Under the pieces are notes generated by a model. It was not told the origin of the DNA. It did not search any database and saw only the letters and a program-made list of their open reading frames with translations. A program made the position numbers and the translations under genes. Positions 1,158-63,839 of a stretch of DNA of 64,000 nt are shown here, one piece after another. Origin of the DNA: Oopsacas minuta (lineage: Eukaryota; Animalia; Porifera); the NCBI GenBank assembly GCA_024704765.1, contig JAKMXF010000302.1, positions 124,001 through 188,000 of the forward strand. Direction: 5' to 3'. Every line of letters starts with the position of its first letter. Within the stretch, counting starts at the first letter, position 1.

Positions 1158-1460
1158 CATAACTTGTTCAATCCCTGTTAAGCTGTTATTGACCTGTATA
1201 TTCCTGCGTAGTATATATTAGGTTCAACAATAACTTTTCTACTTCATGTACTCTTGATTTATATTTTAGTAACATCGTCTATTGTGTTATTTCATTTGTT
1301 TGTTTCGATCACATGGACTGTGTATTGTTCTAAATGTAATATATTTATTGTATTCGTTCATTTGTCAATTTATACAAACTGTCCTTAGAGGACAAATTAA
1401 ATTTCGCAGGATCTTATCCACCTACTCAAGTTTATACTTTCTTAGTTTGGTATAAGTATC

Positions 1461-2186
1461 ATGTGTGCAGTCAATATAGATGAAAATAGTCTCTACGTCT
1501 TAACTGATAGAAGCATAACTCCAACTAATAACTCCCGTGGAGATGGGATGGAGAATATCTGTGAGTTTAGTTTTGATATAGATGACATCATGGAAGGTCT
1601 TGATGTCTCGATTGATCCCTCTGATAAGAAAGAAGATATGGGTAACATACTAGATGATTATATCAATGATTTAGCTCCCTTAGGCCCAGATGAAATGGGA
1701 GAAGATGGCAATTCTACTTCCATTGGTTCTAGCATTGTTAGTAGTGAGGGGGAATCTTCCAGTTTATTTGGAAGTTCATATAATGCTATTACCTTTGTAG
1801 AACAGTGTACCAAGGATATTATGGATATGAACACTTTACCCGATGAAATGGAGATTGGTCCTGAGGACTCTCCTCCTCTCTCTCCTCTCTCTAACTATAC
1901 TAACTCATTCACACAAGAATCTCATACGATTATTCCACAGGGAGAGATATCATCCCTAGGTAGAGCTATTATAACTACACCTCTAGATACACCAGCTGAT
2001 CCTTTATTAGCAGAGCTAAAAGATAAACTATCCAGTTTACAGTGCTTTGAGAACGTGCATATGTATAAAAGCAGTGAGAGAAGGTGCTTTGATTTCTCTA
2101 CACTATCTCCAGATGACGTCATTAGATCAACAGAGAATATTTATAACATAAACAACAAACAAGAAAAAAAGAACAGCTGTTTGTAA
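1461..2186 (+). CDS. Acidic low-complexity protein (241 aa) with a C-terminal FDFxxxSPDD motif; candidate Ski7/HBS1L-V3-like exosome adaptor
   Basis: Intact ATG-to-TAA ORF with coding-like composition. RRCFDFSTLSPDDVIR lies at about 2079-2126. The functional call rests on this one short motif. Confidence 0.55.
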   Translation: MCAVNIDENSLYVLTDRSITPTNNSRGDGMENICEFSFDIDDIMEGLDVSIDPSDKKEDMGNILDDYINDLAPLGPDEMGEDGNSTSIGSSIVSSEGESSSLFGSSYNAITFVEQCTKDIMDMNTLPDEMEIGPEDSPPLSPLSNYTNSFTQESHTIIPQGEISSLGRAIITTPLDTPADPLLAELKDKLSSLQCFENVHMYKSSERRCFDFSTLSPDDVIRSTENIYNINNKQEKKNSCL

Positions 2187-2483
2187 TAATCTTTATTTAA
2201 TCGAGTTTTGTGTATATTTGATTTCTATGACCTGTAAGCTTGTCACTACTAATGTTTAGTTAATTAGTTCTGAACAAAATACAAATGGGGAAGTAAAAGC
2301 AAACTTAATTAAGTTTAAATAGTTAACCTTTACCACGTGTCTTGCATGCGATACTCAATAGGCCATTAACTAAGCTATAAAATCGCCTATTTGTTATAAA
2401 TATTATTTGTAGAACCAATTGTTACAATTCTCCGACTTATTAGAAGCTTGCTTTCGAGACGATCTCCTTCTCCCAGTTCAAGG

Positions 2484-2795
2484 ATGGCTTTCTGCGGTTT
2501 CAGCAGTGAGGTCTATAAAGACCACTTTACAACAGGCGTATACACCTGTTCTAATTGTAACTACGAGTTATTTGACAGTAAATCTAAATTCAAACATTCT
2601 TCTCCCTGGCCTGCCTTCACAAGCACTGTACATGCTGATAGCGTATCTAAACGTTCCGAGACTAAGACAGCTTTTAAGGTGTCATGTGGTAAATGTAAGA
2701 GTCCACTAGGTCATGAGTTTGTTGGAGATGGTCCAGGCGGAGGGTCACGCTTTTGAATATTCTCAAATACTCTCAAATTCGTTGAGAAACAATAG
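2484..2795 (+). CDS. MSRB1: Methionine-R-sulfoxide reductase B1 (selenoprotein R), 103 aa, with TGA 2754-2756 read as Sec
   Basis: MAFCGF start, two CxxC motifs (CSNC, CGKC), HSSPWPAF and [27 protein letters not shown] matches the MsrB1 SRFUIFSSSLKF motif across the UGA, and a SECIS follows. Confidence 0.95.
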
Positions 2796-2845
2796 AGCCT
2801 CGCTTCTATCATTACCCTCCTAATTCATAGTCTTCTTCATTCAAC

Positions 2846-2911: not shown

Positions 2912-3097
2912 TTTGTATGTATGTATGTGTAGAGGTTGCATTTATTAACTTTGAGAATTGCTAAGTATTTTGTTGTATTCATTTATTGTTTTTATCTATA
3001 AACTGGGTTTATTGTACTTTAGCTACTAATTTGCACTCTCTACGTGTATATTGTTTGGTATTATAATTATGAGTTAGCTTTATAGGTATAACAGAAA

Positions 3098-6679: not shown

Positions 6680-6803
6680 TTAATATCGTTAAAATATCAT
6701 AACTTCGCTCATAAATATAAAATTACTTCCTTATTTATCCTATTATTCAGCTTTATTAGAACTAATTATACATCTACTGCTATTCTTATATGGGTAGAAA
6801 GTC

Positions 6804-9800
6804 ATGAAAATTGACAAAATTAAACTGAAGAGGAGTGTCAATGATTTAGTGAGTTGCCCTCTTTAGTTATTTACCCTCTCAGTAATTAATGTTATCCTGT
6901 ATGTAGCCTCAATCATGTAGAGATGTTATACAATTATTCAAATCTTGTCCTGATCAAGTTCTACTAGCAGAACTCAAGAATACAATTACATGGAATTTCG
7001 GAAAGGTATTATAGTACATTAACTTTACTTCTACAGTATGTTATACGTATATGTATTGTCTAATAGAGCGAGTTGTATCACTGGATAGATGTTCTGAACA
7101 GATTTGATCAAATATTATCTGAGTGTACTCAACTACCTCCCGAGAATCCTCTCTATGAACCAGAGAACATTTATCTAGTTCCTGACATAGCTGATCCTCA
7201 GGTTTATACTGTCATATTGCTTATATATTTGTTACTGTAGTTAATTATTCAATTCTATTTAGAAACGAGAATTAGTTCTACAAATCCTCTCATTCACAGC
7301 ACTGCTTATAGAGAATGCGAATGCTAGGCACACGTACTACTCTATGGAGGTACTATTACGGCCTTATATTCATTAAGTTAACGTATTAATTATATCTTAC
7401 ATATATCTAGCACTTGATTGCTCTACTCACAAGCAATGACTTAGACGTAGTTCTGGCATCACTTAATGTTATTTTCGTATTCAGGTAGGTAACTAATGTA
7501 TTTCCCTAATAACCCATGGTACTTATCTTTTCTTATATGCTAGCAAGCGGTGTCATTATATAAGCAGACTCCCAACTTCTCAAAGAAACGCACTAACCAA
7601 CAGACTAGTACATCTAGCTGAGTCTATGGGAGGGAAGGAGAGCGGGTTTGGTCTGTGTAAACTATCTAAAATACACGATATGCAGGTATGTATTGTTCTA
7701 TGTGTATAATACTTGTTTATTTGTATGTAACACCACTATTATTTACTTTATAGCATTTTCCAGCTTCTGCTACTTCTGTACATTTTGAATTTGCTCTTCA
7801 AGGTGCTTCTGAAGATGAGGTTAGTACATAAATTCATAATCCCCACTCCTCTACTCCTCTACTCCTCTATAAATATTATTCTTATTATCTTATACATTAT
7901 TTAGTTTGTAGATAACAATCAAACTATACAGCTAGACAACTTATATAATGTAAGTTATTGTTGTTTTCCTTACTTGTTGTTGTTGTTTATATGTTTCATT
8001 GATTAGTTTACAGAAAATCCACAACAAATTTTACAACATGTTCTCAAGACATATACTATATCCCGACAAAAACAGGTGATTTATTATTCACGAATTCCCC
8101 CACTTTCTAGGCCTTAAATTTAAAAATTATTCCATCTTTTAGTTTCACTTACTCTACAGAATACAGAGAGCAATGCATTTCCCTAATTTTAATAAGAGAT
8201 GTCAGTGTATAGAGGCACAACTCATGGCTAAATCTATTCTTAGTAAGATCTATTCTGTTAGAATTTACTGTAAATATTCTGTAACTTATACGTACATGTG
8301 TTGTTTAGTCTATTCTGCTTTTGTACCTGACTTCATACAGACCTCAGTGGAACAGGGATTGATAGAAGAGCTAGTTGAGCAGCTGGAAGTAGACTCAGAT
8401 GATGACGTCATAATGGTATGATTAATTAATAACTATCACAGAATAAGTATTGCTAATCTAATCTCATTATTTGTTAGAAATTAAAAGCTGCTTGTTTCAG
8501 AAATCTTACAGCTCTCTTACAACAAGAACGAGAACCAAGGTATAGAATTATAACATGAACGGTAGACTTTATGACCAGGGATAACCATATTTATAACTCT
8601 TCTAGAAGCTGTCCTATCATTAACAAAATAATATCAGCTTTAGATTGTCAGAATTATTACGGTATTCTAGCCTCTCTAGTTAGGAAGATTATTAAAACTA
8701 TGACAGGTGAATAACGCAAAAATTATCTACTTTAATGGCAGAACGTATACTGATAGCTTTATGTATTTAGAAATGAATGTTCTCCTATACTCTCAAGCCT
8801 TCATTACTACTCTATTCTCATTTCTCTATCACATGGCTATTAACGAGACAAGTAAGTTATATTATACTTACGTAATTAACCTTTGGTATCAATTCCTATA
8901 TATACTTGTAAAGGTGCAACTGCTCTGATTGCAAGTGGACACATAGAGTTCTTAATTCAAGTTATTTCATGGAAGACAGACAACCCTCTTAATGTATCAG
9001 TGAGTGCGAATACTTCATGTATACCTGAGTTTATACTAGTTTTGTATTTATACTTGTATTCAGTTAGTAACACGAGCTGTTAGAGTAATAGATCTACTCT
9101 CTACTCTTGATATACAGCCCACACAAGCTAAGTCTATTTGTGACATGTTATTCGAGAGATTAGAAGTGAGTAATTTGCTATGATATGGAATATAATATAT
9201 ATATTATGTGTAATGCAAACAGATGGAGATGAAGATTTGTAGAAGAGATGCACCATATGAGTTACCAGCTGTTAATCCTAAAGACCCTGAAGTTAAAGGA
9301 GATAACAGTCCGGATAAGGATGGAGATAACAAGAGTACTGAGAGTAAAGATATTGTTAAAGTAGAACCGATGGATCTAGAGGAACCTCAATGTACTGTAA
9401 CCCCTGAACAATTGCAACAACATTTATTAGAAATGAGGCAATCGAATCTACAATGTCTTCCTCAGAGATCAGCTCTCATAAAATCTCTTCTGAACTTCTT
9501 CAAGAAAGCAGCTTCTGATTTGTTCTTCCCTGAAACACTTCGTAATCGTTAGTGAATTAATATTAATAACAATCAGCTGATATTATATATCTCTCTATTG
9601 TAGTTTGTGAATCTCCTCTGCTCCCTCATCTCAAGCATATTATAAGCAACGTAGAGTACTATGGTCCTACTCTATACTTACCAGGTAATTTGACTGGTTT
9701 ACTTACTATTCTTATGACATATTATGCTACTCTCCTTCTAGCTACTGAGATAGTAACTAATCATATTCTTAATGAGCCCTCTCATCTCACCCCTCTACAA

Positions 9801-12800
9801 ATGACAGGGTTACCAGGAGTAGTACTTAATTCTCTACTATTCAAACCAGTATGTTATTAATTACAATTAAGAGTTAATTAAAATAGCCATTAACTACATT
9901 ATGTACTGCTGCTGGGTCTCCTCTACCCTTACTCTCCTTCAGAACCTTACCTCTGACTATATCTATCAGCTGATTTCTGTCTTTAAACTTCTCTACAATA
10001 CCCTGATTCTGTTCAAGCACTGTATCTAGCAATTTCCTTATTTCTTGTGTATCAATTATCCTATGTAGATTATCTTCCTCTATAATTATATCAATACTCC
10101 TATCATCTCCATTCTCTATAGCTGTTAGAATAGCTATACATGTCTTCTTGGTTATCCTATTGTCAAGATATTGTAATTTTATCAACTGATGTAGTACGTC
10201 ATATGTTACCCTAGAGTCTTGTAAGTTAGCATTTCTCTTTGCTAATATTCCAACTAATGTACTCATAAATTGGTAAATAACTTTAGGAGATATTTTAGGT
10301 TCTAAGTTAGTAGCGTTTTCGAGATATTGCAACAGTTCTTCTTTCATTAATAGATTTTCAGTTTCATCTGTTCTCAAATCGTAAGTCTGCAATAATCTAG
10401 CTCTCTTCTCGTTTGGTAGCTCCACCAACAATTTCCTCACTTCCACTAGATCTATACAATCAGCTGTTTGCTCTGGACTAACCTTATGGAATTCTATTGC
10501 ATCACTATCTATAACCCATACGGGAGGGAGGTCAGGTTCTGGTATGTATCTGTAATCACTTCCTCCACCTTTCTCTCTCGTTGGATACGTAATTGAGCGT
10601 TTGTTATCGAACATACGCGTCTCTTCGTGAACTTTCTCTCCTCTTTTATACATCTGTGTCTGTCTGTTAATTTCGTATGAGATAGCTTTGTTGATGAACT
10701 TTGTACCAGAAATATTCTTTACCTCTACTCTTGGTGCTGGCTTACCGTCCTTATGTACTGACACGTTAGCATCTACTCTGAATGATCCATCTTCCATTTT
10801 ACAGTCACAAACTTGTAGAGTTTTCAATAGAAGCAGTAATTCTTTTATAAATGAAGCTGCTTCTTGTCCAGTACACATATCAGGAGCTGTTACAATCTCC
10901 ATAAGACCTACACCAGCTCTGTTATAATCCAGTAGAGTTGTGTTAGAATCTCCTATTAGTATCTTGGCACTATCTTGCTCTAGCTGTAATCTATTTATTC
11001 TAACTTCAAAACATTCCCTGCTGCTGGATTCAACCAGAGTTTGCGTTCTAATGTTGATCTTACCATTCTCTGCTAATGGTACTCGTTGCTGCGTTATTTG
11101 ATACCCTGCTGGTAGATCAGGATAGAAGTAATGCTTCCTATCAAAATATGAGACAGCATTGACTTTACACTCCATCGCTATAGCAGTAAGTAACCCATAC
11201 TCTACACAGGTTTTGTTTAACTGAGGTAGTACTCCAGGAAGAGCTATGTCTAGTAGGTCAGCACATGTGTTAGGTGGTTTATCTGAGCTATTTGTAGCTA
11301 CTGAGAATAGTTTTGTGTTAGACTTTATCTGAGCATGTATCTCCAAACCTATTTTACTACTCCATTGATTTGTTGAGAATCCTCTAACTATCCTTCTCAC
11401 ATTAACTATTCTTGTAAATTTTATCATTTTATAAATGTAACGATACTACATTTGTATTTGGGAAGAAATAGCATAGATTATTATTTAGGGTCTGTATTAA
11501 TTTATACTCTCCAGATCCCTCCAACTGTTGACATATTGACTGCACTACCTAATATGCTAAGTGCTTTGTGTCTGAATGAGAGAGGCTTAAACGTGTTCTT
11601 ACAAGCTCAGCCATTCGATAGATTATTCTCCATTCTAATCAGTCCTGAGTACTTGAGTGCTATGAGGAAACGTAAGAATGTAGAGAGCAGCACTACAGGA
11701 TTTGATGCTACTCCAGCTGTGCTTGGTTCTTCAATGGACCAACTAATGAGACATCAACCTACACTCAGATCCCATGTGTTTGACTCTCTTATAAAGTTGC
11801 TTGAGCGGATTCTGGACTATGGGACTGATCCTGATTGGATCATTACCCCATCCAAAGGGGATACTATAGAGGATGTTATATCATATTATTCTGAGGAACC
11901 AGATGATAGCAGTCCTACTGTATCTGAGAATGTTACATTGGAGAAGTTAAGTAATCAACTTATGGAGAAATCCAGACACATTCCACTAATAGACTACATA
12001 CTGAATGTGGTGAGTATACTACAGTTAAAGGGGACACACGGGTTGAGTGATATGTTATCCTCTTATTCTCTATAGATTAGATTCATTTCTCATATAGTAG
12101 CAAATAAGTCATACAATGATGATCATTTGAATGAGTTTCAACAGAGAGGTGGTATGTCCCTGATACTGAAGATTCTGTGTATGCCTAATCTCCCTCTTGA
12201 TTTCTCTAATTCTCAAGCTCTTACCGTCATCCTGTCTTCCATAAAACAGATAGTTGTGAGTTGTATTTACATGTTCTTGAATATATTATATGAACTTGTT
12301 ATTATCATTTTTCTGATAGGAATTTATGAAAAATCCTCAAGACATTTTAGAGTTCATCCTATCACAACATCTCTCTCAGTTATTAGACACCTTATCCCCC
12401 CTTTATGAGACCTCTGCTATTAGTCTCAAATCAGTCCTCATGTCCTGCTCACAGATAGAAAACCAAGTTTCCACTAACTCTCTCCTACATAGGATGTGTA
12501 TAACGCAGCACTATATAGCTCTTCTTGCTAACATGCACAAAACTAATGTACGTAAATACTATTTCTTACAAAGTACTGATTTGGATTGCAATATTTTAAT
12601 GTAAATCTGTTACTTAGAATGAAGCTAAATTTCTAAAGTACTTGGGTGTATGGATTAAAGATGACAGCACAAAGCTCATATTAAAGCAGCTATCTTTCCT
12701 TCACAACTCTCTGTTCTGGGAGAGTGCTCTCTTACTCAATGAACCAGTCACTTCTTCCTCTCTCATCCCTGTTAATTGTCCAACTAAAGAGCGAGAGAGA

Positions 12801-21800: not shown

Positions 21801-24800
21801 GTTATTCAGTGATGAAGAAGTGAATTTAGTGATTGGATTACTGAGCTGTAAATCTTGTGATGACCAGAGTCTGAATAATGTCAACCAATTGGTGATGAAA
21901 CTAGCTAAATACCACCGTTCTATAATGAAGCACATATACTCAACTCTAGTAACAAAATGTAAGGAGGTTGGCTTATATCTGCAAACAGAACTGCAAGCTT
22001 TGAAGGATGAACTGGTATCATATAATGCAGCTAATCCGATTAGCTCTGAAGAAGCTAAACAGAAAGCCAACAAGAATCCAATCTCTTTCTACACACTAGA
22101 CCAGCAGAAGATCTCCAAAGCCTACCGACCTGATCTCCACCTCCCCTCTATGTCTCCCTTCCTCTCTAAAGCATCTAACGTGTCTCTATTCCTACGTATG
22201 CTCAAGATACTCCAGATGTTAAAGAAGGAAATACAGATGCTAGCTCTAGGAGAAGATTCCCCCTTCTTTGACTGGGATAACGGATTCGATATGCCTCCAC
22301 AGCATAGCGAGTTCAGGGATAGACTGAGAAGAGATATGAGGACACATGTTCAAGAATTGACAGAGCGAAGTGACCAAGTTACCGAGCAAATACAAGGCTA
22401 CATGCAAGTGCTTAATGAGGATCCAGATTCATTTGATGAGAATGCTTTGAGTCTGAGAACTGAAGCTATCCGTCATGTCATGCTTAGGAGACAAGAAGAG
22501 AGAGGCGTACCGAGTAGTTCCAGAGGGAAGAGAGACCCTGCTGTAGGTTAACCTATTATACGTACAGCTATTTATTTTCTACTTTTAATTGTATTGTTTC
22601 TTAGGATCAGATTCGTTCTACTCCCTTGATAAAGAACAAGGACAGTTATAGATTGAGTCAGGTCTTGAGCTTGCCTAGTCTATGGGCATTATTAGAAGAT
22701 TGTCTGGAGGCACTAGCTATGTCGTGTCATGATCATGCTGTGCTTGTAATGCAGAATATGGTAGAATGTTTCTTCATTGTACATGCTGGGGACAGAGATG
22801 ACAGGGTAAGAATATGATTAGCTAGAAATAGGAGAATATATTTATTTATTATTAACCTTGCGTTTAGCTTGTTGAAGAACCAGACGATACGGACATGGTG
22901 CTGTCTCGTTACGACAGAGAAGGATCTCTTGCTTCTCTCTCCGATCTTCCAACAGAATCTTCTCAAACTCCTGCCAGTCCTAGTCGTAGTGTGTCAAGTT
23001 TGTCTCTAAAGGATGATCTTGATATGGCTAAGTTCTTACAGTTTGCAGGTTTGTAAATGATATTAAATTGAATAATATTTGCAACATAAATTTATCGGGG
23101 ATATTATAGATTGCCATCGAGTCGTGTTAAACCAAATTCTCCGTCAGACAACTACTCCTCTTAGCTCTGGAACTTTTTCTATTCTCATTGACCACACCCG
23201 GCTGTTGGACTTTGATGTTAAGAGGGAGTACTTCCGTCAAGAGCTGGAGGCAACAAGCTCTCACTCCAGGAGAGAAGACATGATAATGCAGATTAATAGG
23301 AAAACAGTGTTTGAGGATTCGTTTAGACAGCTCAGTCGTAAATCACCGGAAGAGATGAAGAACAAACTCTACGTCATCTTCAAAGATGAAGATGGACAGG
23401 ATGCTGGAGGGCTGCTTAGAGAATGGTATCTGATTGTTTCTCGCGAAATATTCAATCCTGACTACGCTCTGTTCACAACAACACCTGGTGATAAAGTGAC
23501 ATATGTTCCGAACAGCTGTTCGTATGTTAACCATGAACATTTGGATTATTTTAAGTTTGTAGGTCGTTTGATTGCTAAGGCTATTTACGATAACAAACTA
23601 CTTGACTGTTACTTTGGTCGTTCTTTCTACAAACATATTCTGAGTAAGCCAGTGCAGTACACAGATTTAGAATCAGAGGACTATGGATTCTATAAGAGCA
23701 TGTTATTCCTCATGGAGCATAATCTCAATGAGATCGGTTGTGAATTCACATTCAGTACAGAGGTAAGCTACTTATCTCTCATTTTATTAATTAACTGCCT
23801 TACCTATATTAACTCACTTATTCCCTTATTTCATATGCTTATTTTCAACATATACTACTCTATTATAATTAGCTATAACCAAATGGGATTTCTAGAGTGT
23901 ATCTTCAGCCCGAATTTATATTTCATCTACAAATCAAGTGGATTTGTAACCTACTCTCCAAACTTTATGGAATCAATCCCTAATGTTATCCTTAAAGCTG
24001 GATACTTTGTAATTAACATAGCTTGGTACCTCTCTCCTATCATACTTTATAATTACTATAAACATTCTGAAAATTTCTTCACTTTGTCTACCTTACAAAC
24101 CAGTGCTAAGCTATTCACTCTCTCAGCTGTTTTGTTAAGTCCACTTTACCTCACACGGGGGTTAGGACGTTATATGAGTCCTGAGTATCAGGAATTTTTG
24201 AGAACTCTCGAAAGGGACAGTGAAGAACCTCACACTAGCAACTACCAATCTTTGAAAAAATACGATTTTGATATTCATAAAATCCCTCCAGCATTTTATC
24301 AATCAAAATCTAGAGTAATTCCAATCACTCCCTTACCCCCTCTTGCTCAGAAATATTCCACTATAATTAGATATTCGTTTCTATACGGATTTATTCTGGA
24401 CTTATGGCACTATTTGATAGCACACTCAGTCGGCAGGGCAGCTATATACCCAGGGTCTCTGTCTATTGTAAACTCTATCGTTGGTATTGACTGTGCTATA
24501 GGTAGACACAAGCTGTTAGTACAGCACCATGGATTGAGAGCTAAGCTCAAATGCAACTCTGGACATACAGTTGATACGATTTACGTTAAGCTTAACGAAT
24601 CAATGTATTCTGATACCCTTGTTATATGTTGCGAGGGGAATGCAGCGTTCATGGAGAGTGCATCTACCCACCATTTCATAGGACGTGGTTACTCAATATT
24701 AGGTTGGAATCATCCAGGATTCCAACACAGTACTGGCATGCCTTACCCAGCTATGGATCAAGAAGCAGTTGTATCTGTTATCCAGTATGCTATAGAGGAG

Positions 24801-26331: not shown

Positions 26332-26635
26332 TCAAACTTTTACAACCCTTGGGTAGTCTCGCTTGTTTCACAGTGACTTAATCAGACTTTGTCAATCATT
26401 GTAATCACTACCTACTTTAAGCGCATAGCTGGCTTGTAGATTATTGCCTCATCATATTACTTCTATGTAGGAGAACTGTTACTAGACATAATAATTATAT
26501 GACTTTAGATTCTAATTACTAGTTTGAATGTTGTCTATGATTGTTTGTATTATAGTTTAACTAGTATGGGATAATTTGTAACAAGCATTGTGTATATTAG
26601 GGTGTATTCGGTATCTTTACTGTCTGTTATGATAG

Positions 26636-28027: not shown

Positions 28028-28124
28028 TTTATTGTATTAGCATATTTTAGTGGCATAACTATGATAGAGTTTTTATATACAATATTTGATGTATATTGAG
28101 TAAATATGATACCTTAGTCAGCTT

Positions 28125-32993: not shown

Positions 32994-33094
32994 TGTTTCT
33001 ATTATGAAAATATTGTTACTTATTTGATTTAATTATTAAATAATAATTTTGTAAGCCCTTGAGTTACATATTATTTATACTTTTGTGTTAGCGC

Positions 33095-33964: not shown

Positions 33965-34067
33965 AACTTCCTATTTACTTTTACATGTTCATGTGACAAA
34001 TAGTATAAATGTATATTCTTGAGCATCGTCTTAGCCATTAACTAATTGTCTGTATTTGGCTCTAGTT

Positions 34068-35885: not shown

Positions 35886-36018
35886 CAATGTTTCCCTTAT
35901 ATATGCGTTGCATTTTTATACCATTTGTGACTTACCTATCCAACTTACTATCTGTACTTCATTTTAAATGTATATATTTTCTTATACGTATTATTATTTT
36001 CTATTTATTCCAATTAGT

Positions 36019-37236: not shown

Positions 37237-37388
37237 AAGTCTACAGGATATACCAGGAACTTCGAAGATAATTTTACAACTATTTTACTTACATATCTCA
37301 CTTTTGAATTGTACTTTTCTTATTATACTATTTCTTTATCGAATATATTACTACTTAATTTCAATATTAATCTCTCATCTGCTTTAGA

Positions 37389-39731: not shown

Positions 39732-40200
39732 TTTATTCAATTTTCAGATTATTAATTTTCATCTTTGCAATTATTATGGGCAACCTCACTTCTCCATTTT
39801 ATTGTTGTTGTGTTGTCGATACAGTCAAATGAAATGAGTTTCATGCGATTAGCTTTTACCATTCGAACAAAGATCGATTTTACAGTATATTCTTGTTGTA
39901 TTGAATACTTTGTGAATAAATTACATACCAAGGAATCATTTATCCGAATATTCATTTCTTAATTAGTTACAAATGTATATTGCAGCAGCACTACCATATC
40001 AGTTACATAGAGCTAGCTCAGCTTATGCGGTGGACTATGCTCATCAGTTTAGTGTATTGTGTTGCATTATAGGTTTCTATGAATCAATGTAGTAACATGT
40101 TGTGGTCTATCTAACTGGCTTCAAGTTGTCTTCCATCTTACCTAATAACTTCTACCACTACATATTTCCTTATTTAGATAATATTAACTAGCATTTAACT

Positions 40201-43219: not shown

Positions 43220-43228
43220 TATAAATAG
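43220..43228 (+). promoter_or_regulatory. TATA box candidate upstream of the DRAM/TMEM150-like gene
   Basis: TATAAATAG begins 51 nt upstream of ATG 43271, inside the inverted repeat GACTAT-AA-ATAGTC. TATA-like strings are common in AT-rich DNA. Confidence 0.45.
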
Positions 43229-43270
43229 TCCCTCTCGCTGGAAAGACTATATATAATTCGAATCTTAAAT

Positions 43271-44326: not shown

Positions 44327-44587
44327 AAACTTTTTAATGTGAATGTCTTACAATTCTCGTTAACGACTGACCTTTGAGATACTCGATCCGTTCACTTCCT
44401 TCTTTCACATAGACAACTTGTATTTATTTATTGACATATTTATTTACGTATTTACTTATCTGTTGTTTTGGTAGTTCACGTTGAATATGTCTGAATTATT
44501 GTTTATTTTATCTACTATTAAGGGGATATCAGAATAACAGCAAAATAGATCAAATTTAATTATGCTTAATCTAGCGTGTGTTCTAGC

Positions 44588-49578: not shown

Positions 49579-49833
49579 AAATAATTATGACGCAATCTGT
49601 TTTGTGAATCGATTCTCACTTATCTTTTAATTTTCCCCTGTAAAGCATGGCAGCTATGGTATTTTACCTTCAAATCTATAACTGATGGAAATTTGAATTT
49701 TAATACAAGTTATACGGGAAACTCTAAAATACATAAGTAGATAGCAGAATTGCTTTCTAGCGGGAATCTATGAATTATACGTTATAGTCTTACTAATTTA
49801 TTGAATATCAACTGATATATTAGACCTAATTCT

Positions 49834-52118: not shown

Positions 52119-52466
52119 TATCGTCAGTGCTTTGTCCCTCCTAGCCGCGAATAGGCCTCTGTCTGTCTGTCTTGCATAGCTCCTGAAGATGGTCTCATAT
52201 CAACTCTAACTTTGCTCATACACATAAACTTACTTAGCAATTGTTTGTACTATTATTATGCAGAGATTCTCACTTCATATAGTTTTGAGTAAGTTTGAAT
52301 TTGTGTTAACCACACAATTTTGCCATTTTTGTGAGCTTTGGGGTGAGTAGAGAATGTATCCATAGTCCAATGACAGATTAGTTAGGCTCTTATACGCTAA
52401 TATTGATGTATAGCAAATAACAATAATATATTATTAGTATCTCTCTCTCTTGTTTAGTTGATAAAA

Positions 52467-53369: not shown

Positions 53370-53502
53370 ATTTTATTTGAAATATAAAAGAATGAGAGAT
53401 ATAGTAATACTGCATTATAAACCAATGTAATGATTTCATGTCAGATCGTTCTCCTCATTATAACGAGTTATTTCAACTGATTAGCACTTTATCCGTATTC
53501 TT

Positions 53503-54462
53503 ATGGCAGAAGCTACCCCTGTAATATCAAATATAAATGGTTCACATTTCAAAGATCTCCCATTCTTCATTAACCAAAGCTTTCTAGAGCTCACTAAGCC
53601 TGCTTATGGGAAAATATTAGACAAATCATCTATAGAGACATTATGTGGGGGTTGTGAGATATCGCGAGACATTGACTTGGCTAAATCATTGAGTACAGCT
53701 GGAGGAGAGGATTGGTCTGTACTGAAGGGGTATCCTAAGTCTCCCATGGTGTTAAGATTAGCTTGTTGCTTGATTGTGTGGATGGATAGAGGGAGTGCTG
53801 AGCTCTGTCCTACACATCATCTACCTGATATGTATCTGATGAATGAGTCAGAGCAGAAACAGAAACGTATCCTCAGATTGGACCAGGGATGGGAGGTAAT
53901 TACGCATTGGGTTATAAATATATTTGTATAATATTTATATCATATTACGTGTATATAGGTGTTGAAGAAGTTCCCTGATAACTGGTATCAATGGCCTGAT
54001 CAAACAAAACAAAAAGAGTTAACAAACCTTATTTCTCAGATAGAATTGAGAGGAGTATTAGATTTAATCGGGTTTAGAGAGACAGTAGGTAGCAAGCTGT
54101 TAATACCTCCTACAAGAGAGGTTATAATGCAAACATTCACTGCTCTACACTCTGAAGGCTCTAAGCTTTCGGTAGGGGCTAGAGCTTTTGCTAAACACGG
54201 ACATCGTGACCATACAGCCTCTTGGTGGGGGACATGTACTGGTTCAGAAGAGCAGAAGAATGAATCAGCGCTCAAAATCGTTACTAAGATCCTAGACAAT
54301 GCAGCGTGGATGAATATACACTTTATGGTGCATGACACTGGTGTATTAGAGGCTAGGACTGTAGAAGGTTATGGAGTAAGGTGGTTAGCTGATGGGAAGG
54401 AGTTCAGAGGGTTCTTAGAGCCCCAGATGGAGGGAGGACATGAAGCTGGGTGGATACATTGA
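53503..54462 (+). CDS. Uncharacterised conserved protein, two exons (intron 53896-53958)
   Basis: The two ORFs join in frame (GWE|VLKK). The C-terminal block LSVGARAFAKHGHR...WWG...WMNIH...EGYGVRW...FRGFLEP...GHEAGWIH looks like a conserved catalytic domain. Confidence 0.8.
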
Positions 54463-54550
54463 TTGGATATATTTAGTTTGATTTTGTCTGTAAACTCTTT
54501 TAGATGTTTTGTTTTATTTGTTACTTGTATATTTCAGTTAGAGTTATAGA

Positions 54551-56220: not shown

Positions 56221-56385
56221 CCTCTATTATACACGTAACCCAATCACTTGATTGTCTTCCAACTAATTTATGATTATATTCACATTATTATTCATTATAC
56301 CGCCTACATGATTAGTTCAGGGTATATTCTGTGGTAATTTAGTCAATACAAGTCATTGAGTCTATGTTAGTAGGATAATTAGCTT

Positions 56386-56895
56386 ATGATGCTCTCAGAA
56401 ATATACAAAGCTCACCAACAAGAACAGAATGAACGTCGCTTAGAGCAAGAACGGAAACGAAAACAGGCGATTAAGAGTGCTCAAGAAGTCAGCTCAGGAT
56501 TTGTAGATGCACTAAACAGTGGAGTAGAAGAAGCGTATGAGAATCAGAAGAAAATAAATTTACTTGTAAAAGATCTGCAAATACAATCTACTGTATTTTT
56601 AAAACAAGCCTCTCAATGGATAAACACAGTAGAAGGCTTCAATGCATCCCTCAAGGAACTAGGAGATCTTCCTAACTGGGCTAGCATCATAGAGAAAGAT
56701 ATGCTGCTTATCTGTAGATCTCTAGAATATGCTTATAACGGCCCTGCGGTTGATATCACCGACTCACCTATTCCTGAACACGTTATCCCTGTAGATACCC
56801 CTCCTATTTCTCCAATTGCTAATCTTGTTAAAGAACCAGGATCTGGTGCTGGCGAAGAGTTCAGACCTGAAACACCCCCAAAACAATCTTCATAG
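56386..56895 (+). CDS. BLOC1S1: BLOC-1/BORC subunit 1 (GCN5L1) with a Pro-rich C-terminal extension
   Basis: LNSGVEEAYENQKK, QWINTVEGFNASLKELGDLPNWA.IIEKDM and LEYAYNG. Confidence 0.9.
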   Translation: MMLSEIYKAHQQEQNERRLEQERKRKQAIKSAQEVSSGFVDALNSGVEEAYENQKKINLLVKDLQIQSTVFLKQASQWINTVEGFNASLKELGDLPNWASIIEKDMLLICRSLEYAYNGPAVDITDSPIPEHVIPVDTPPISPIANLVKEPGSGAGEEFRPETPPKQSS

Positions 56896-57074
56896 CTAAT
56901 AAATACTATTATTGTTGTAGTATATTCTAGTCCATAAAATAATTAACTAATAAAACACAGGAGATAAATATTTCCTTTTCTCTAAGTCCACCATACACGA
57001 TGCTACTTTTCGTGTTTGATTGGCTTTATTTGTTTGTGGCAATAGAATTATTAGTTTTCAGTTCGCATCTATAA

Positions 57075-57593
57075 ATGGCTTCAACAATTAGGAAGGGTGA
57101 AATTCAGATTGGTGAAAAGTTACCAGAGATTGAAATAATGACAGCTCCAAGTACTAAAGTTAAAATAACTGATCTTTTCAAGGGTAAGAGAGGGATCTTA
57201 TTTGGTTTGCCTGGTGCATTCACACCAACTTGTTCTAACACACATCTCCCCGAATTTGTAAGAGATCATGCTAAATGGGTAGAATTAGGATATGAGATCA
57301 TTTGCTGTGTTTCTGTTAACGACGCCTTCGTGATGGAAGCTTGGGGAAAACTGCATCAAGTTGAGGGCAAGGTCGTAATGATTTCAGATATGAATGCAAC
57401 ATTGACCAGGGCAATCGGACTAGAAATCGATTTGACGGATAAACTAGGAAGCATCCGCTCAAAACGGTACTCTATGGAAGTGAATGATAACTTGATTACT
57501 AGTATCCATGTTGAGTCTAGTCTGGGTGCTACTGGGTGTAGCACATCTAGTGCAATGCTAGGTTCTCTTAGTCAAGATATGATCCCATTATGA
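57075..57593 (+). CDS. PRDX5: Peroxiredoxin-5 (atypical 2-Cys), intronless
   Basis: GLPGAFTPTCS..HLPEF, SVNDAFVMEAWG and RSKRYSM. A second Cys lies in ATGCS near the C-terminus. Confidence 0.92.
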   Translation: MASTIRKGEIQIGEKLPEIEIMTAPSTKVKITDLFKGKRGILFGLPGAFTPTCSNTHLPEFVRDHAKWVELGYEIICCVSVNDAFVMEAWGKLHQVEGKVVMISDMNATLTRAIGLEIDLTDKLGSIRSKRYSMEVNDNLITSIHVESSLGATGCSTSSAMLGSLSQDMIPL

Positions 57594-57827
57594 AAACGAG
57601 TTTATAGAGAATTGTGTGATTATAATTTTAACAATATTATCTACTATTTGTTCTGGATAAATTTATATCTAGGGCAGCTAGCTTTGATCTATTTTTATCA
57701 AGTATTTGCTACACTATTATCTCCTTAAAGTATCCACAATGATACATCATGCTACGTTAAGGGTATTTACAGTACTGCACGTGCAATAACGATGATTGCA
57801 TTACACACCAAGCTCTACATGTGCATC

Positions 57828-57832
<5 letters not shown>

Positions 57833-57876
<44 letters not shown>
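57833..57876. repeat. (TA)22 microsatellite between PRDX5 and vasa
   Basis: Uninterrupted TA run of 44 nt. Confidence 0.95.
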
Positions 57877-57879
<3 letters not shown>

Positions 57880-58031
57880 CAACCATATCACTCATTGCTA
57901 GTTACTATACTTATAGCTAAAACTTTGTATCACATATTTTTATCTTATACAAGTATTGTGGATAACACACCTTTTCTCTGCTTTGTTATCATTAGCTATT
58001 ATCTGGGAAGAATCAGAGATAGTTTCTAATC

Positions 58032-60455
58032 ATGGCTGATTGGGATGATGAGAGACAGGATGGAGGCACCTCGAGTGCACCAGGTTTTGGAGATGGACGT
58101 TCAGGTGGCCGCGGGGGCGGTTTCGCAAATCGTGGATTCGGAGGGAGAAGAGATGACGACTCTGGTAGAGGAAGGAGGGGAGGTTTCGGAGGAGGCCGAA
58201 GAGATTACGATTCAGGATCAGGAGGTTTCGGCGGGGGAGACAACGAATCAAGGGGAAGGGGAGGATATAGCAGAAGAGACGATAACTCAAGTGGAGGCAG
58301 GGGTTACGGTAGAAACGATGATGACTCAAATAGTAGAGGTTACCGCGGAGGTAGAGATCGTGAAGGAGGCGGATTTGGTTGGCGAGGTCGCGATGGGGGA
58401 TTTGGTGGTGGTAGAGATCGTGACGGGGGCGGGTTTGGAAATAGAGATCGTGATGGTGGCGGATTTGGCGGTAGAGATCGTGATGGTGGTGGTGGTGGCT
58501 TTGGAAATAGGGATCGTGATGGTGGTGGATTTGGCGGTAGAGGTCGTGACGGTGGCGGCTTTGGGGGCAGAGATGGTGATGGAGGAGGCTATCGTGGGAG
58601 AGGCGGATACCGTGGAAGCAGAGGAGATGACGACGATGAGGAAGGTGGTCGCGGCGGATTCAGGTCTAATAGAGGAGGAAGGGGTGGTTCAGGCTTTGGA
58701 GATAGTGATGGTGGTTCTAGTCGAGGATTTGGAAGCAGAGGCTTCGGAGGAGGAGGTGGTGGCGGGGGCGGTGATTCAGAGGGTTTTGTCATGAGCCGCT
58801 CATTTGTCAATAGCTCTTCAGATGATAGAGGTCGTGGCCGTGGTGGATTCAGAGGAGGTAGAGGTCGTGACAGAGATGAAGATGGTGGTGGAGAATTCAA
58901 TAATTTTGGAGGAAGAGGCGGAGGAGGTGAAAGGTTTGGAGATGATGGACCGAGACCTGAACCTTATATCCCTCCAGCTCCATCTGAAAAGGAATCTGAA
59001 ATATTTGTGAATATCACGAAAGGAATCAATTTTGGACGTTATGACAACATTCCTGTTCAGCTAACTGGTCGTGAACCTACATCCCAGATCACTACATTTG
59101 CTGAGGCTCGACTGTCAACAACCATATCGTTGAATGTTACAAAAGCTGGTTACAATGAACCAACTCCTGTGCAGAAATATGGAATCCCAGTTGTTCTAGC
59201 CGGTAGAGATTTGATGGGATGTGCTCAAACTGGTTCGGGAAAAACTGCAGCTTTCCTTTTGCCAATACTCTCCACTATGGTGAGTAAGAGCCTCTATCAG
59301 AACACAAGCTTGGATCCGGGCACGGCTCACCCCACTGCTCTTATAATCGCTCCAACTAGGGAATTAGCTTTACAGATATACCATGAAGCTAGGAAGTTCT
59401 CCTACACAACTATAATAGAGCCTGTTGTAGCGTATGGTGGAACATCAGTAGCTCATCAACTCAGTAAAGTAGAGAAAGGCTGCCATATTCTTGTAGGGAC
59501 ACCTGGTCGTCTTATTGACTTTATGAATCGTGGTAGAGTCAAGCTGGATCAAGTAAAGTTTCTTGTACTAGATGAAGCCGATCGTATGCTGGATATGGGC
59601 TTCATTCCTGATGTTAAAAAGATGGTCCATGAATTTGACATGTGTGGAAAGAATGATCGCCAGACCCTAATGTTCTCAGCTACTTTCCCAGAAGAAATAC
59701 AGAGACTCGCGGCAGATTTCTTACACGATTATCTTTTCCTCACTGTAGGGAAAGTGGGTGGAGCCGCAAATGATATTGTTCAGAAAATTGTCCAAGTTGC
59801 AGCTTTGGACAAACGCGAAAAGTTGGCTGAAATATTGCGAGCCAATCCTGAACATAAAGTTCTTGTATTCGTAGAAACGAAAAGACAAGCTGATTTCTTG
59901 GCTACATACCTCTCTCAAGAAGCCTTTCCTACTACTAGTATACACGGAGCTAGACTTCAGAGAGAAAGAGAAGAGGCCTTACACGCTTTCAAAACTGGTC
60001 GTACTCCAGTCTTAGTTGCTACTTCTGTAGCTGCCAGAGGTTTAGATATTCCTAAGGTGAATCATGTTGTCAACTTTGACATGCCGAGCGACATTTCTGA
60101 GTATGTCCACAGGATTGGGAGGACAGGACGTATTGGACACACCGGTCTCGCTACCTCGTTTTTTGATTCAGCAAAAGACCAGGCTATAGCCAGGAGTCTT
60201 GTCAAGATATTATCCGACGCGGAACAAGATGTACCTGTATTCCTAGAGGAGATCGCTGAGGGAGCGATAGGCACAGGATACGGCGGTGCAGGAGGTGGCT
60301 TTGGAGGTACAGACAGAAGAGAGAGGGGAGGCGGAGGCCGAGACTCCGGTAACCGGGCTGATGGATATGGGGGTCAAACTTTTGGCGACCCAATCAACAC
60401 CGGTTTTGCAAGCTCTGTCCCACCCACTGCTGGGGACGATGAGAGCTGGGATTGA
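58032..60455 (+). CDS. DDX4: Vasa DEAD-box helicase, intronless
   Basis: RGG/FG-rich N-terminus, PYIPP..GINFGRYD, AQTGSGKT, PTRELA, GTPGRL, LDEAD, SATFPEEIQRLA, VGKVGGA (vasa type, not the GRVGST of PL10), HRIGRTGR and an acidic Trp-containing end DDESWD. Confidence 0.92.
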   Translation: MADWDDERQDGGTSSAPGFGDGRSGGRGGGFANRGFGGRRDDDSGRGRRGGFGGGRRDYDSGSGGFGGGDNESRGRGGYSRRDDNSSGGRGYGRNDDDSNSRGYRGGRDREGGGFGWRGRDGGFGGGRDRDGGGFGNRDRDGGGFGGRDRDGGGGGFGNRDRDGGGFGGRGRDGGGFGGRDGDGGGYRGRGGYRGSRGDDDDEEGGRGGFRSNRGGRGGSGFGDSDGGSSRGFGSRGFGGGGGGGGGDSEGFVMSRSFVNSSSDDRGRGRGGFRGGRGRDRDEDGGGEFNNFGGRGGGGERFGDDGPRPEPYIPPAPSEKESEIFVNITKGINFGRYDNIPVQLTGREPTSQITTFAEARLSTTISLNVTKAGYNEPTPVQKYGIPVVLAGRDLMGCAQTGSGKTAAFLLPILSTMVSKSLYQNTSLDPGTAHPTALIIAPTRELALQIYHEARKFSYTTIIEPVVAYGGTSVAHQLSKVEKGCHILVGTPGRLIDFMNRGRVKLDQVKFLVLDEADRMLDMGFIPDVKKMVHEFDMCGKNDRQTLMFSATFPEEIQRLAADFLHDYLFLTVGKVGGAANDIVQKIVQVAALDKREKLAEILRANPEHKVLVFVETKRQADFLATYLSQEAFPTTSIHGARLQREREEALHAFKTGRTPVLVATSVAARGLDIPKVNHVVNFDMPSDISEYVHRIGRTGRIGHTGLATSFFDSAKDQAIARSLVKILSDAEQDVPVFLEEIAEGAIGTGYGGAGGGFGGTDRRERGGGGRDSGNRADGYGGQTFGDPINTGFASSVPPTAGDDESWD
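58352..58590 (+). repeat. Coding tandem repeat of about 30 nt (RDRDGGGFG[G/N]), about 7 degenerate copies
   Basis: Recurring agagatcgtgatggtggcggatttggcggt-like units in the vasa N-terminus. Confidence 0.85.
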
Positions 60456-61139
60456 AAGCTCACAATGACATTATGATATATTAGAAAACGCCCACAGTTA
60501 GCTAATTAGAAAGCTCAAGGTGCATTCACCCATGCTCCTATCTACTAAATGAGCACCTGAGCAATTTATAAAATTACATCTTCTCAAACTGAGTAATTAG
60601 ATAATTACTATATTGCTCATAGCTATGTACTCTGGTTCTTAGTGCATCACAACAATGTAATTGTTTTGCACTTCAAGAACCAACTAACTCTCCGTTATAT
60701 TTTTGTGATAGTATAGATTTTCTTTATTTCTCTTGATTTGTTTACTACAATCAAGAACTTCATAATTGTTAGTGTATATTTTTGTCTCTAGGATACTTTC
60801 GTATATTTTTGTGTGGGTTTTGTTTTCTAGTTATCTCAATTACATTCAATTATGTCTAACTCTAGTTATATGCAACGGGGGCTTTGGGGAGGGTTAATTC
60901 TACTTCAAACATCAGTTGCCTACATTGAATATTTTACAATAAAATGTTGATTATTCATGTGTCTAAGTTTAGCGAGCTCTCAACCTCATTGAGGGCAACA
61001 AGTTACCTATTTACTTGCTATCTTCCTACTCTCTGTACTTAGCATTACTTTGACAAAACTTTCTCATCAATACAATAATTATAAGCTATCAACTAATGTT
61101 TCATATAGAGTTCTATTAATCAACTAAAATTTTCTTATT

Positions 61140-63311
61140 CTAAGAAATCGTGCTGATATCTATATGTAGCTGTTCTAATTTCCTCTTCGCATCTTTATGA
61201 GAGTGTCCAAATGTTAATAACTTTGATTGGATCTGATCAAATTGAGTCCTTCCCACCATTCGGGAGGAACTCTTTCGTCTGTTGGCGCCTATAAAATTAG
61301 GATTATCAACTTTGTTCCTTATCTGTAAGATCCTATTGTTGAGTAATGGGATCTTATTGTCTAACTCTCTAAGCGTTTCTTGGTATTTCTTCTCTTCTTT
61401 AGATAGACTAGGGTTTAGCTGTAGGAGCTGTTGCATTACTCTGTGTACTCTATCCAAATTAGAAGCATATTTAGCGTGTGCTAGAGATATCTTATCCTGT
61501 ATCTCTTTAGAGTTAACTTTTAAAGAATGCAAATCATTTCGAGTTAGGGAAATTGCATTTTCGAGAGCTCGTTTGCTGTTTAGGAGAGAATCTGCTTTGT
61601 GTAGAACTTCATCTAGTGCTTTGTATTGAGCTAGTTTAACTTGTTGTCTCAATAAATCAGTGCTATTTATTAGCAAACTATACAATTCCTCTTGAGTAAC
61701 GTCTTCATGAGGCTGGTTCTTTAGTATAGGGAGAGGATCAGCTGATTTTAGAGTTATTTTTATAGAGTCAGTTAGTTGTACTCTTTGAGAAATTGATGAA
61801 GCGAGGGAAGTATTAGCTGCTAGTGGCATGGTAGCTATTCGGTTGATAGGTGGTAGATGTTTTGATAGAGAATTTCCGTCTTTGAATGTGAATAGTAGAA
61901 CTGGAGGTCCTAACGTAACCAGTGATACAAGGATCAGTCCGTACAGCTGATTAGATTCAGTGTGTAGCAATAACTCAACTTCTATACTACTCATTGAGTC
62001 GTTTTGTGAGAGAAGAGATAGGTCGTAACCTAGCTCATCTTGTTTACAATATGCATTCATTAGTTCTAAAGAAGGTAGCGATACATTATATACACCATTC
62101 TCACAGTACAGAATGTATCTGTAAGCTGAATTAGGATCTGTTATAATGTATGGAGGATTAGTGAATATATTCACAGTATTTTTAGTTGACTTATCTTCAG
62201 GATTTAAGTCTACAACCTCTAGAAGGAATATTATATCATCAGGTGATTTCTCAGGGAGAGAGGTTGATGTTTGTGTGGGAGGAGTATTGAGGTGTACACA
62301 GTGATATAACTTCCCTGGTGCAGTTACAATTACAAAACTAGGAACAGCTGATCGTAAACAGGCTATTTTGCATGGTTCATCCTCGTAGGATTCTGGAGGT
62401 GATGGGTGTATTGGTAACGCATCTGAGTATGTAATCCCATCTCCTCTACCCATATCGATCTGACTTAAGTCCATAGATATGAAGTGTACATCTCCATTCC
62501 CTAATAGGAGATAGAGTGACAGCCATTGACCTCCTGGTGTCTTACCAGAGCTAGGTATAGTGAAGTCAAATGATACAGGTTCATCACCCATAGCGTGAGA
62601 TAGGGATATCGTAGTGGAGATTCCGGAGTTTGGGTTAGGGTTCAAGTTGTACATGCTGAGAGGTTCTAGAGTGTCTGTGGGTGAGAAAATCCGCAGATAA
62701 CCGTCAGAGCAAAGTGTGAAAATAAGCATCGCTGAGAGTTCCACAGGAGAAAAGTGCACTTCCTTGATGTCTACCTTCCTACCCCTTGGCTTATCAGTAT
62801 ATACTTGAATTTGATTACAACGTATAGTGGTTGAGAGAGGCTTAGTTAGATGATGAGAATAGGTACGAGCATCATAGATAAACTTAGGTAGACTGAGGAG
62901 ATAAGCAGAATCCTTAGAGACTAGAATACAGAGAGATCCGTCTGGGGATAGAATTAGTTGAATGATCGTGGTTTGAGGTTCTGGAGAGAGACGGAGTATA
63001 GGCCAGTTTGGAGGAGATAAGATGTCTATTGTGACTAGTGAGACTGCATTAATCTCACGCTTAGAAGGGAACCACAGTAATAGGATTCCTTTACAAGAAG
63101 CTGTGAGATTGAGTATAGATGGTGCACATTGACTTTCCGAAGTAGTTGGTAGTATCGAGTATTTGAGAGAATTAAATATTTCATGACTTGATAGCTTGTC
63201 AGTCCAAGAAGAGAAATCGGACTCTGAAATACTCGAACGAACAGAACGCTGGAACATATCTCCTGATGGAGTATTGAGGCTGTTAATAGGTGCAGTCAGA
63301 GAGTCAGACAT
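61140..63311 (-). CDS. NUP88: Nucleoporin NUP88, intronless
   Basis: Beta-propeller-like N-terminal region (LRIFSP, FDF, LYLLLGNGDV, KLYHCVHL, DPNSAYRYILYCENGVY) followed by a C-terminal coiled coil. Diverged; the match is from memory. Confidence 0.75.
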   Translation of the reverse strand: MSDSLTAPINSLNTPSGDMFQRSVRSSISESDFSSWTDKLSSHEIFNSLKYSILPTTSESQCAPSILNLTASCKGILLLWFPSKREINAVSLVTIDILSPPNWPILRLSPEPQTTIIQLILSPDGSLCILVSKDSAYLLSLPKFIYDARTYSHHLTKPLSTTIRCNQIQVYTDKPRGRKVDIKEVHFSPVELSAMLIFTLCSDGYLRIFSPTDTLEPLSMYNLNPNPNSGISTTISLSHAMGDEPVSFDFTIPSSGKTPGGQWLSLYLLLGNGDVHFISMDLSQIDMGRGDGITYSDALPIHPSPPESYEDEPCKIACLRSAVPSFVIVTAPGKLYHCVHLNTPPTQTSTSLPEKSPDDIIFLLEVVDLNPEDKSTKNTVNIFTNPPYIITDPNSAYRYILYCENGVYNVSLPSLELMNAYCKQDELGYDLSLLSQNDSMSSIEVELLLHTESNQLYGLILVSLVTLGPPVLLFTFKDGNSLSKHLPPINRIATMPLAANTSLASSISQRVQLTDSIKITLKSADPLPILKNQPHEDVTQEELYSLLINSTDLLRQQVKLAQYKALDEVLHKADSLLNSKRALENAISLTRNDLHSLKVNSKEIQDKISLAHAKYASNLDRVHRVMQQLLQLNPSLSKEEKKYQETLRELDNKIPLLNNRILQIRNKVDNPNFIGANRRKSSSRMVGRTQFDQIQSKLLTFGHSHKDAKRKLEQLHIDISTIS

Positions 63312-63413
63312 AACCTATGAATATATCTAACAAATTTTAAAATTAGTTAATTAATATTTCGGTTCAGTTCTTAGTGAATACATTATTTTATTACTGAAAT
63401 AAATTTAATTCTT

Positions 63414-63749
63414 TTATTCTCTAATTACAAATACTTGATCTATATATCTTTCTGGGACTATAAGGATGGAATGTTTTCGTTTCTTTTTAGAATCTCCTAG
63501 CTGGTCTATACTCTGATACTCATCGCACTTCTCTAGAATTATGTTTAGAGCATTGTCTGTACAATGGAACTTCCCCTTCAATACCCTACCATCTTTAGCT
63601 AGTATAACCATCTTCTTGCTGAGTAGTGACCTTATGTAATCACGCCCTGTAAGTGGTTTAGAAATATGTTCTGTTTTATCATCTGTACTATTGGTGGTAG
63701 TAGTATCAGTGGTATTTGTCCCTACTATGTGCTCGTCTTGATTGCTCAT
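63414..63749 (-). CDS. NAA38: Sm-domain NatC auxiliary subunit (NAA38/LSMD1)
   Basis: SLLSKKMVILAKDGRVLKGKFHCTDNALNIILEKCDEY. The CTD motif in Sm1 is characteristic of NAA38/Mak31. Confidence 0.8.
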   Translation of the reverse strand: MSNQDEHIVGTNTTDTTTTNSTDDKTEHISKPLTGRDYIRSLLSKKMVILAKDGRVLKGKFHCTDNALNIILEKCDEYQSIDQLGDSKKKRKHSILIVPERYIDQVFVIRE

Positions 63750-63839
63750 TGCTAATTGTAAATAAAAATATACAAATTTAATAATACCTATCTTATATAT
63801 GTAAGTTATACGTTCATGAGCTATCTACAGTACAATTGA

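Follow-up and report, generated by a model that had tools for sequence, protein, structure and literature searches.

Splice-acceptor-like sites directly upstream of start codons in the glass sponge Oopsacas minuta: probable sites of spliced-leader addition

Gene organization and the YAG sites before start codons

The stretch of DNA analyzed here comprises 64,000 nt of the genome of the glass sponge Oopsacas minuta (contig JAKMXF010000302.1 of assembly GCA_024704765.1, positions 124,001 to 188,000) and is referred to as the window hereafter. Our subject is a feature shared by nearly all genes in it: a YAG trinucleotide, resembling a 3′ splice acceptor, that lies immediately upstream of the start codon. 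The window is 38% G+C, its long open reading frames (ORFs) are almost all found on the plus strand, and its introns are short (50–70 nt) with GT..AG ends. Twenty-one consecutive plus-strand genes are co-oriented. The spacers between genes have a median length of 220 nt: 8 of the 20 spacers measure 88–152 nt, and some extend over 300–630 nt. The canonical AATAAA or ATTAAA hexamer occurs in only 4 of the 20 spacers.

We counted 24 start codons, namely 23 with a near YAG and one outlier, and took as the distance (d) the number of nucleotides between the last YAG and the ATG. This distance is at most 3 nt in 12 of the 24 genes, at most 10 nt in 19, and at most 18 nt in 23. The original prediction, in which these sites were regarded as unpaired acceptors for spliced-leader (SL) trans-splicing, had given the same counts, and the recount reproduced them exactly. 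Because no ATG intervenes between the YAG and the start codon in any of the 23 genes, the gene's own ATG is the first ATG after the putative junction in all of them. The gene names were confirmed by Pfam. As for the placement of the starts, nine were fixed by N-terminal conservation among glass-sponge orthologs (RTF1, POLR2C, ORF53503, GAS8, BLOC1S1, PRDX5, vasa, NUP88, and NAA38), and others were fixed by the position of the domain or by the annotated start (RIOK2, PBLD, GATB, MSRB1, ABHD16A, HUWE1, and MTREX, the last at 3098).

Enrichment over background

A comparison of the YAG frequency with shuffled spacers had been proposed in the original prediction. When such comparisons were made, an enrichment over background was found with all four null models. 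In 5000 dinucleotide shuffles of the 60 nt upstream of the starts, a YAG fell within 3 nt of the ATG in 2.9 genes on average (maximum 9) and within 10 nt in 7.8 genes (maximum 16); the observed values of 12 and 19 genes were matched by none of the 5000. Among all other ATGs in the window, 18%, 40%, and 55% have a YAG within 3, 10, and 18 nt, respectively, which gives p = 4 × 10⁻⁴, 9 × 10⁻⁵, and 1 × 10⁻⁵. YAG occurs at 2.6% of the nucleotide positions in the spacer bodies, from which 10%, 25%, and 39% of the starts are expected to have one within the same three distances (p = 8 × 10⁻⁷, 4 × 10⁻⁸, and 7 × 10⁻⁹). It had been cautioned that TAG is common in this DNA and that three starts (SDCCAG8, chimera, and BRPF1) were chosen without homology. 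The enrichment persists after these three are dropped, with p = 9 × 10⁻⁵ to 1 × 10⁻⁷ in the spacer-density test. The acceptor-before-ATG signature is thus confirmed as real and far above chance.

Three further properties of the sites were examined. One is the T content upstream of the YAGs, which is 45%, as compared with 51% for cis-intron acceptors and 40% for the spacers overall. The T-rich tract noted in the original prediction does resemble that of cis acceptors, but it was dropped as independent evidence, since the spacers are 40% T throughout. Another is the branch-point-like motifs, to which the prediction had also pointed: CTRAY is found at 5 of the 23 sites against 3.8 in shuffles, and ACTRAT at 4 of 23 against 0.9, which is only a mild enrichment. 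The last is an AG-free zone upstream of the acceptors, and this candidate was also dropped, the gaps being no longer than expected.

Donor-like sites in the spacers

For the question of whether the acceptors are unpaired, a donor matrix was built from 28 confident short introns of the window, and a donor was sought at least 40 nt upstream of each acceptor. No donor-like GT was found there in 11 of the 19 plus-strand spacers. At least one was found in the other 8, and it stands at an intron-like distance in only two of them, those of POLR2C (52343) and BLOC1S1 (56334). In addition, an exon donor of HUWE1 (GT at 23763) stands 107 nt upstream of the ABHD16A acceptor. Most of the spacers thus offer the acceptor no donor-like partner.

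Conservation in other glass sponges

Syntenic loci were reached through PRDX5 orthologs (69–79% identity) in four other assemblies (L005, L006, L007/L008, and L009). The gene order RTF1-POLR2C-ORF-GAS8-BLOC1S1-PRDX5-vasa-NUP88(−)-NAA38(−)-orf335-amidohydrolase(−), which occupies 49834–64000 of the window, is kept in at least four other assemblies. Among 39 orthologous starts in the four assemblies, a YAG lies within 10 nt in 27 (background 38%, p = 7 × 10⁻⁵) and within 18 nt in 33 (p = 2 × 10⁻⁵). The YAG–ATG distance for one and the same gene varies among the species; therefore, the site appears to be re-created or maintained near the ATG rather than inherited together with an alignable spacer. 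As read from these genome sequences, the acceptor-before-ATG signature is clade-wide in glass sponges.

A leader-bearing contig of a relative

A Logan contig from run SRR29297748 (L010, 1303 nt) comes from the species of assembly L009. It matches the L009 genome (9323–10606) with 99.8% identity, from the start region of BLOC1S1 to 81 nt past the PRDX5 stop codon, except that its first 24 bases, ACTTCAAATCAAAACTAAATACAG, are non-genomic. They take the place of the genomic sequence from a junction directly behind TTCATTTCCCATAAG, which leaves 5 nt up to the ATG of BLOC1S1; in this relative, a non-genomic leader is thus joined at an acceptor-like AG. When up to 3 mismatches were allowed, ACTTCAAATCAAAACTAAATACAG was not found in the 20-kb L009 locus, including the 9.3 kb upstream of BLOC1S1. 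The junction falls within the first 31-mer of L010 and must therefore be present in real reads. At the other end, L010 stops 81 nt after the PRDX5 stop codon although the genome continues, and with the leader junction at the 5′ end, both ends therefore look like transcript ends. These features suggest that L010 starts with a leader added by splicing, for which trans-splicing is the simplest account. Between its ends, L010 is unspliced and co-linear with the genome: BLOC1S1 is followed by the 155-nt spacer, and this by PRDX5. The SRR29297748 sample therefore probably contains RNA that spans the two genes, and L010 is a candidate dicistronic RNA.

Positions of the individual sites and gene models

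The sites are described here in the order of the window and lie on the plus strand unless stated otherwise. ORF1461 (ATG 1461) has a TAG at 1443..1445 (d = 15), and MSRB1 (ATG 2484), which carries a SelR domain, has a CAG at 2474..2476 (d = 7). The MSRB1 gene (2484–2798) is a selenoprotein gene: the sequence ...GGGSRF is followed by a TGA at 2754–2756 and then by 13 more in-frame codons. Its 3′ untranslated region (3′-UTR) contains a match to SECIS_1, the selenocysteine insertion sequence (SECIS) family, at 2847–2910 (32.4 bits, E = 1 × 10⁻⁴), just under the gathering score. In MTREX, a CAG at 3092..3094 (d = 3) precedes the ATG at 3098, which is the annotated start, and in HUWE1 a TAG at 6795..6797 (d = 6) precedes the ATG at 6804.

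The span of HUWE1 houses other genes. GATB (9874–11427, minus strand) lies antisense inside it, flanked on one side by the exons for DUF908 and the beginning of DUF913 and on the other by those for the remainder of DUF913, and has a TAG at 11446..11448 on the minus strand (d = 18, ATG 11427). A tRNA-Ser(CGA) is located at 15561–15644 on the plus strand (ARAGORN; Rfam 60.6 bits). In the region 23763–25460, which begins with a HUWE1 donor, a HUWE1 intron contains ABHD16A as a complete single-exon gene of the same orientation, with a TAG at 23870..23872 (d = 10, ATG 23883). Since the HUWE1 donor lies 107 nt before this TAG, host cis-splicing must skip the acceptor that the nested gene needs; if trans-splicing and polycistrons are real here, trans-splicing of ABHD16A must compete with cis-splicing of HUWE1.

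In the subsequent part, the TAG of RIOK2 (26633..26635) directly adjoins the ATG at 26636 (d = 0). The next three genes follow spacers of 97, 101, and 103 nt, respectively: TAF1 (CAG 28119..28121, d = 3, ATG 28125), PBLD (TAG 33089..33091, d = 3, ATG 33095), and the SDCCAG8-like gene (TAG 34063..34065, d = 2, ATG 34068). The gene named chimera in the original prediction has a TAG at 36015..36017 (d = 1) before its annotated start at 36019. It is followed by SENP (TAG 37385..37387, d = 1, ATG 37389), the WDR91-like gene (TAG 40189..40191, d = 9, ATG 40201), the BRPF1-like gene (TAG 44584..44586, d = 1, ATG 44588), and RTF1 (TAG 49821..49823, d = 10, ATG 49834). The outlier stands between the WDR91-like and BRPF1-like genes: this ORF, with the ATG at 43271 and its nearest YAG at 43226..43228 (d = 42), encodes a 351-aa multi-pass membrane protein with no Pfam match, and the ORF region extends to 44326. 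A TATA-like tatatataa is found about 20 nt before its ATG. This gene may be transcribed from a promoter of its own, with a 5′ end that is not spliced.

In the conserved block, POLR2C has a TAG at 52455..52457 (d = 9, ATG 52467), with which the donor-like GTGAGT at 52343 could pair in cis, and ORF53503 (ATG 53503) has one at 53482..53484 (d = 18). The TAG of GAS8 (54547..54549, d = 1, ATG 54551; spacer 88 nt) is replaced by GAG, with the AG retained, in a relative that we call organism B. BLOC1S1, whose ortholog has the leader junction described above, has a TAG at 56380..56382 (d = 3, ATG 56386); PRDX5 has a CAG at 57059..57061 (d = 13, ATG 57075), and the vasa-type DEAD-box gene has a TAG at 58020..58022 (d = 9, ATG 58032). 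The PRDX5–vasa spacer contains a (TA)n microsatellite (57836–57876), at which every contig from the DNA runs mentioned below breaks. On the minus strand, NUP88 has a TAG at 63315..63317 (d = 3, ATG 63311), and NAA38/LSM has one at 63752..63754 (d = 2, ATG 63749). A 25th start, which was absent from the original list, belongs to the plus-strand orf335 (CAG 63828..63830, d = 9, ATG 63840), divergent from NAA38. Since the starts at 63749 and 63840 are 90 nt apart and have acceptors at d = 2 and d = 9, the two outrons must overlap or begin inside the neighboring gene.

The public gene models of NCBI differ from the above structures at several places. Four of them are fusions: ORF1461 with MSRB1 (1461–2756), HUWE1 with ABHD16A (6804–26331), BRPF1 with RTF1 (44588–52118), and NUP88 with NAA38 (61140–63749). 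The PBLD model is cut to 154 aa, whereas the intact ORF (33095–33964) encodes 289 aa, and the POLR2C model starts at an internal Met (52554), whereas the conserved MPYANKP start is at 52467.

Discussion

The best explanation of the sites before the ATGs is probably that they are acceptors for SL trans-splicing. In this mechanism, a separate SL RNA would donate a short, capped leader exon to these AGs, the leader would replace the upstream outron or the intercistronic RNA, and the 5′-UTR of the mature mRNA would consist of the leader and 0–18 genomic bases. We infer that Oopsacas uses these exact sites and a single common leader, and that the sites would also serve to cut polycistronic precursors in the tight co-oriented runs. 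The SL reading is favored by the enrichment, by its being shared across the clade, by the majority of spacers in which a donor-like site is lacking, by the leader in the relative, and by the published cases in hexactinellids; the branch-point argument of the original prediction found no statistical support.

SL trans-splicing in hexactinellids is already known and is not new here. A survey of expressed sequence tags by Douris et al. in 2010 reportedly found it in hexactinellids generally. The statement in the original prediction that it had been reported in glass sponges agrees with the published work: Aphrocallistes vastus has a trans-spliced leader of about 37 nt, which was detected in soft-clipped long cDNA reads (Francis et al. 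2023, PMC10282587), and a methods paper counts hexactinellid sponges among the SL users, with operons not reported there. The genome paper of Oopsacas does not mention trans-splicing, leaders, or operons, and gives an average intergenic distance of 2 kb.

Several results weigh against the view that these sites are SL acceptors. Only a single contig from a single relative showed the leader, on a single gene, and the transcript nature of that contig was judged from its ends. The junction in it follows an AAG that is 5 nt away from the ATG, and the nearest YAG, only 1 nt away, was not used; therefore, the exact sites in Oopsacas may differ from the YAGs listed above. Look-ups with NUP88, LSM, vasa, BLOC1S1, and the leader-extended BLOC1S1 did not find a second leader-bearing transcript, each of the five returning the genome or L010 only, and no transcript contigs of PBLD orthologs were found. 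Exact protein look-ups found no transcript contigs of Oopsacas; the protein clusters contain the genome copy only. The public runs X1–X3 and X5 over the window region 52150–58149 proved to be DNA: Nextera adapters are present, joints are absent, and the contigs cross introns; run X5 is that of organism B, which is about 96% identical in DNA. The POLR2C and BLOC1S1 spacers hold donor-like sites at an intron-like distance, and the branch-point argument fails statistically. In A. vastus, the leader was found on only 4% of the long reads (PMC10282587), which is not obviously compatible with near-universal use. An SL RNA gene is expected to consist of a leader exon, a GT donor, an Sm-binding site (like AAUUUUGG), and stem-loops. 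Neither the 64-kb window nor the other loci examined yielded such a gene, and an Rfam scan of the whole window gave the tRNA only. Nine matches to a 20-mer of the leader in JGI metagenome contigs were rejected as chance, as they had no upstream match, GT donor, or Sm context.

Two explanations dispense with a foreign leader altogether. If the sites arose by chance or bias, TAG would simply be common in AT-rich spacers and the start codons would have been picked beside one; a YAG indeed occurs every 30–40 nt and stands no more than 3 nt before 18% of all ATGs in the window, and three starts were chosen without homology. This is extremely improbable, and we reject it: the p values lie between 10⁻⁴ and 10⁻⁸ with the four null models, also without the three chosen starts, nine starts are pinned by N-terminal conservation, and four other species show the enrichment as well. 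The other explanation is that these are ordinary cis acceptors, belonging either to introns in the 5′-UTR or to read-through fusions with the upstream gene. The donor-like sites at 52343 and 56334 are what it would require, for several acceptors a frame-compatible donor is available where the upstream gene ends, and the four NCBI fusion models are spliced at exactly these acceptors. However, 11 of the 19 spacers lack a donor-like site, and about 100 nt of spacer leaves no room for an intron (45 nt or more) and its first exon besides a promoter and a 3′ end. Moreover, unrelated conserved proteins fused as the main product are implausible, and the 24-nt leader of the relative is absent from the 9.3 kb upstream, in a genome with introns of 50–70 nt. 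We therefore consider cis-splicing unlikely as the general account; introns in the 5′-UTR may account for individual sites, that of POLR2C for example, although not for most of them.

If the sites are SL acceptors, the question remains whether they resolve polycistrons, as had been proposed in the original prediction. The shortest spacers between the co-oriented genes seem too small for independent promoters, and every spacer has to accommodate the 3′ end of the preceding gene as well, as exemplified by the SECIS in the MSRB1–MTREX spacer. Polycistrons are suggested by the run of 21 co-oriented genes, by spacers that measure only some 100 nt, and by the putatively dicistronic contig of the relative. 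The proposal stands on this gene order, the short spacers, and the one contig, but not in its exclusive form: since minus-strand, nested, and divergent genes also carry acceptors, trans-splicing cannot serve only to cut polycistrons. It is conceivable, though we do not think it probable, that SL trans-splicing is real and that there are no operons, with every gene transcribed from a separate promoter, situated either in the spacer or within the upstream gene, and with the acceptor serving only to trim a short outron. Most SL1-spliced non-operon genes of Caenorhabditis elegans have this structure. The divergent pair NAA38 and orf335, with acceptors on both sides of its 90-nt gap, cannot be downstream cistrons of one unit; the minus-strand and nested genes (GATB and NUP88) bear acceptors too; spacers of 300–630 nt have enough room for a promoter; and operons are unreported in hexactinellids. 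Against this stand the 21 consecutive genes in one orientation, the eight spacers of 88–152 nt that must also contain the upstream gene's 3′ end, and the unspliced passage of L010 from BLOC1S1 into PRDX5. Returning to the polycistrons, we put forward only tentatively the broad proposal that in glass sponges nearly all nuclear genes are SL trans-spliced and are linked in polycistronic chains, which would be the first operons in Porifera and would include genes nested on the same strand, such as ABHD16A in HUWE1.

If the sites are used as proposed, the public gene models of Oopsacas need correction, in this window the four fusions, PBLD, and POLR2C. SL trans-splicing in glass sponges would be near-universal, in contrast to the 4% of reads in Aphrocallistes. 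Operons in sponges would become testable, which bears on how many times polycistronic transcription and SL trans-splicing evolved among animals. In addition, start codons in glass-sponge genomes can be placed at little cost by the acceptor-before-ATG rule.

Comparison with known systems

The closest known system is A. vastus, which belongs to the same animal class, likewise has a compact genome rich in single-exon genes with conserved microsynteny, and adds to its mRNAs a short 5′ leader of the kind proposed here. The difference is that the published work on it gives neither acceptor positions relative to the starts nor an operon-like organization.

The SL1/SL2 system of C. elegans, with its operons, resembles the window in two respects: one is the acceptors that lie a few nucleotides before the ATG, in the window mostly without a donor-like partner, and the other is the co-oriented genes with spacers of about 100 nt. 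In contrast, neither a specialized downstream leader of the SL2 type nor a U-rich intercistronic element was seen in the Oopsacas data. The tunicates Oikopleura dioica and Ciona, in which SL trans-splicing is combined with operons, form a separate lineage, and the runs of the sponge are only putative transcription units. Common to both are the compact genome and the closely packed co-oriented genes, and the 5′-UTRs that follow the leader in tunicates are very short, as those predicted for the sponge would be.

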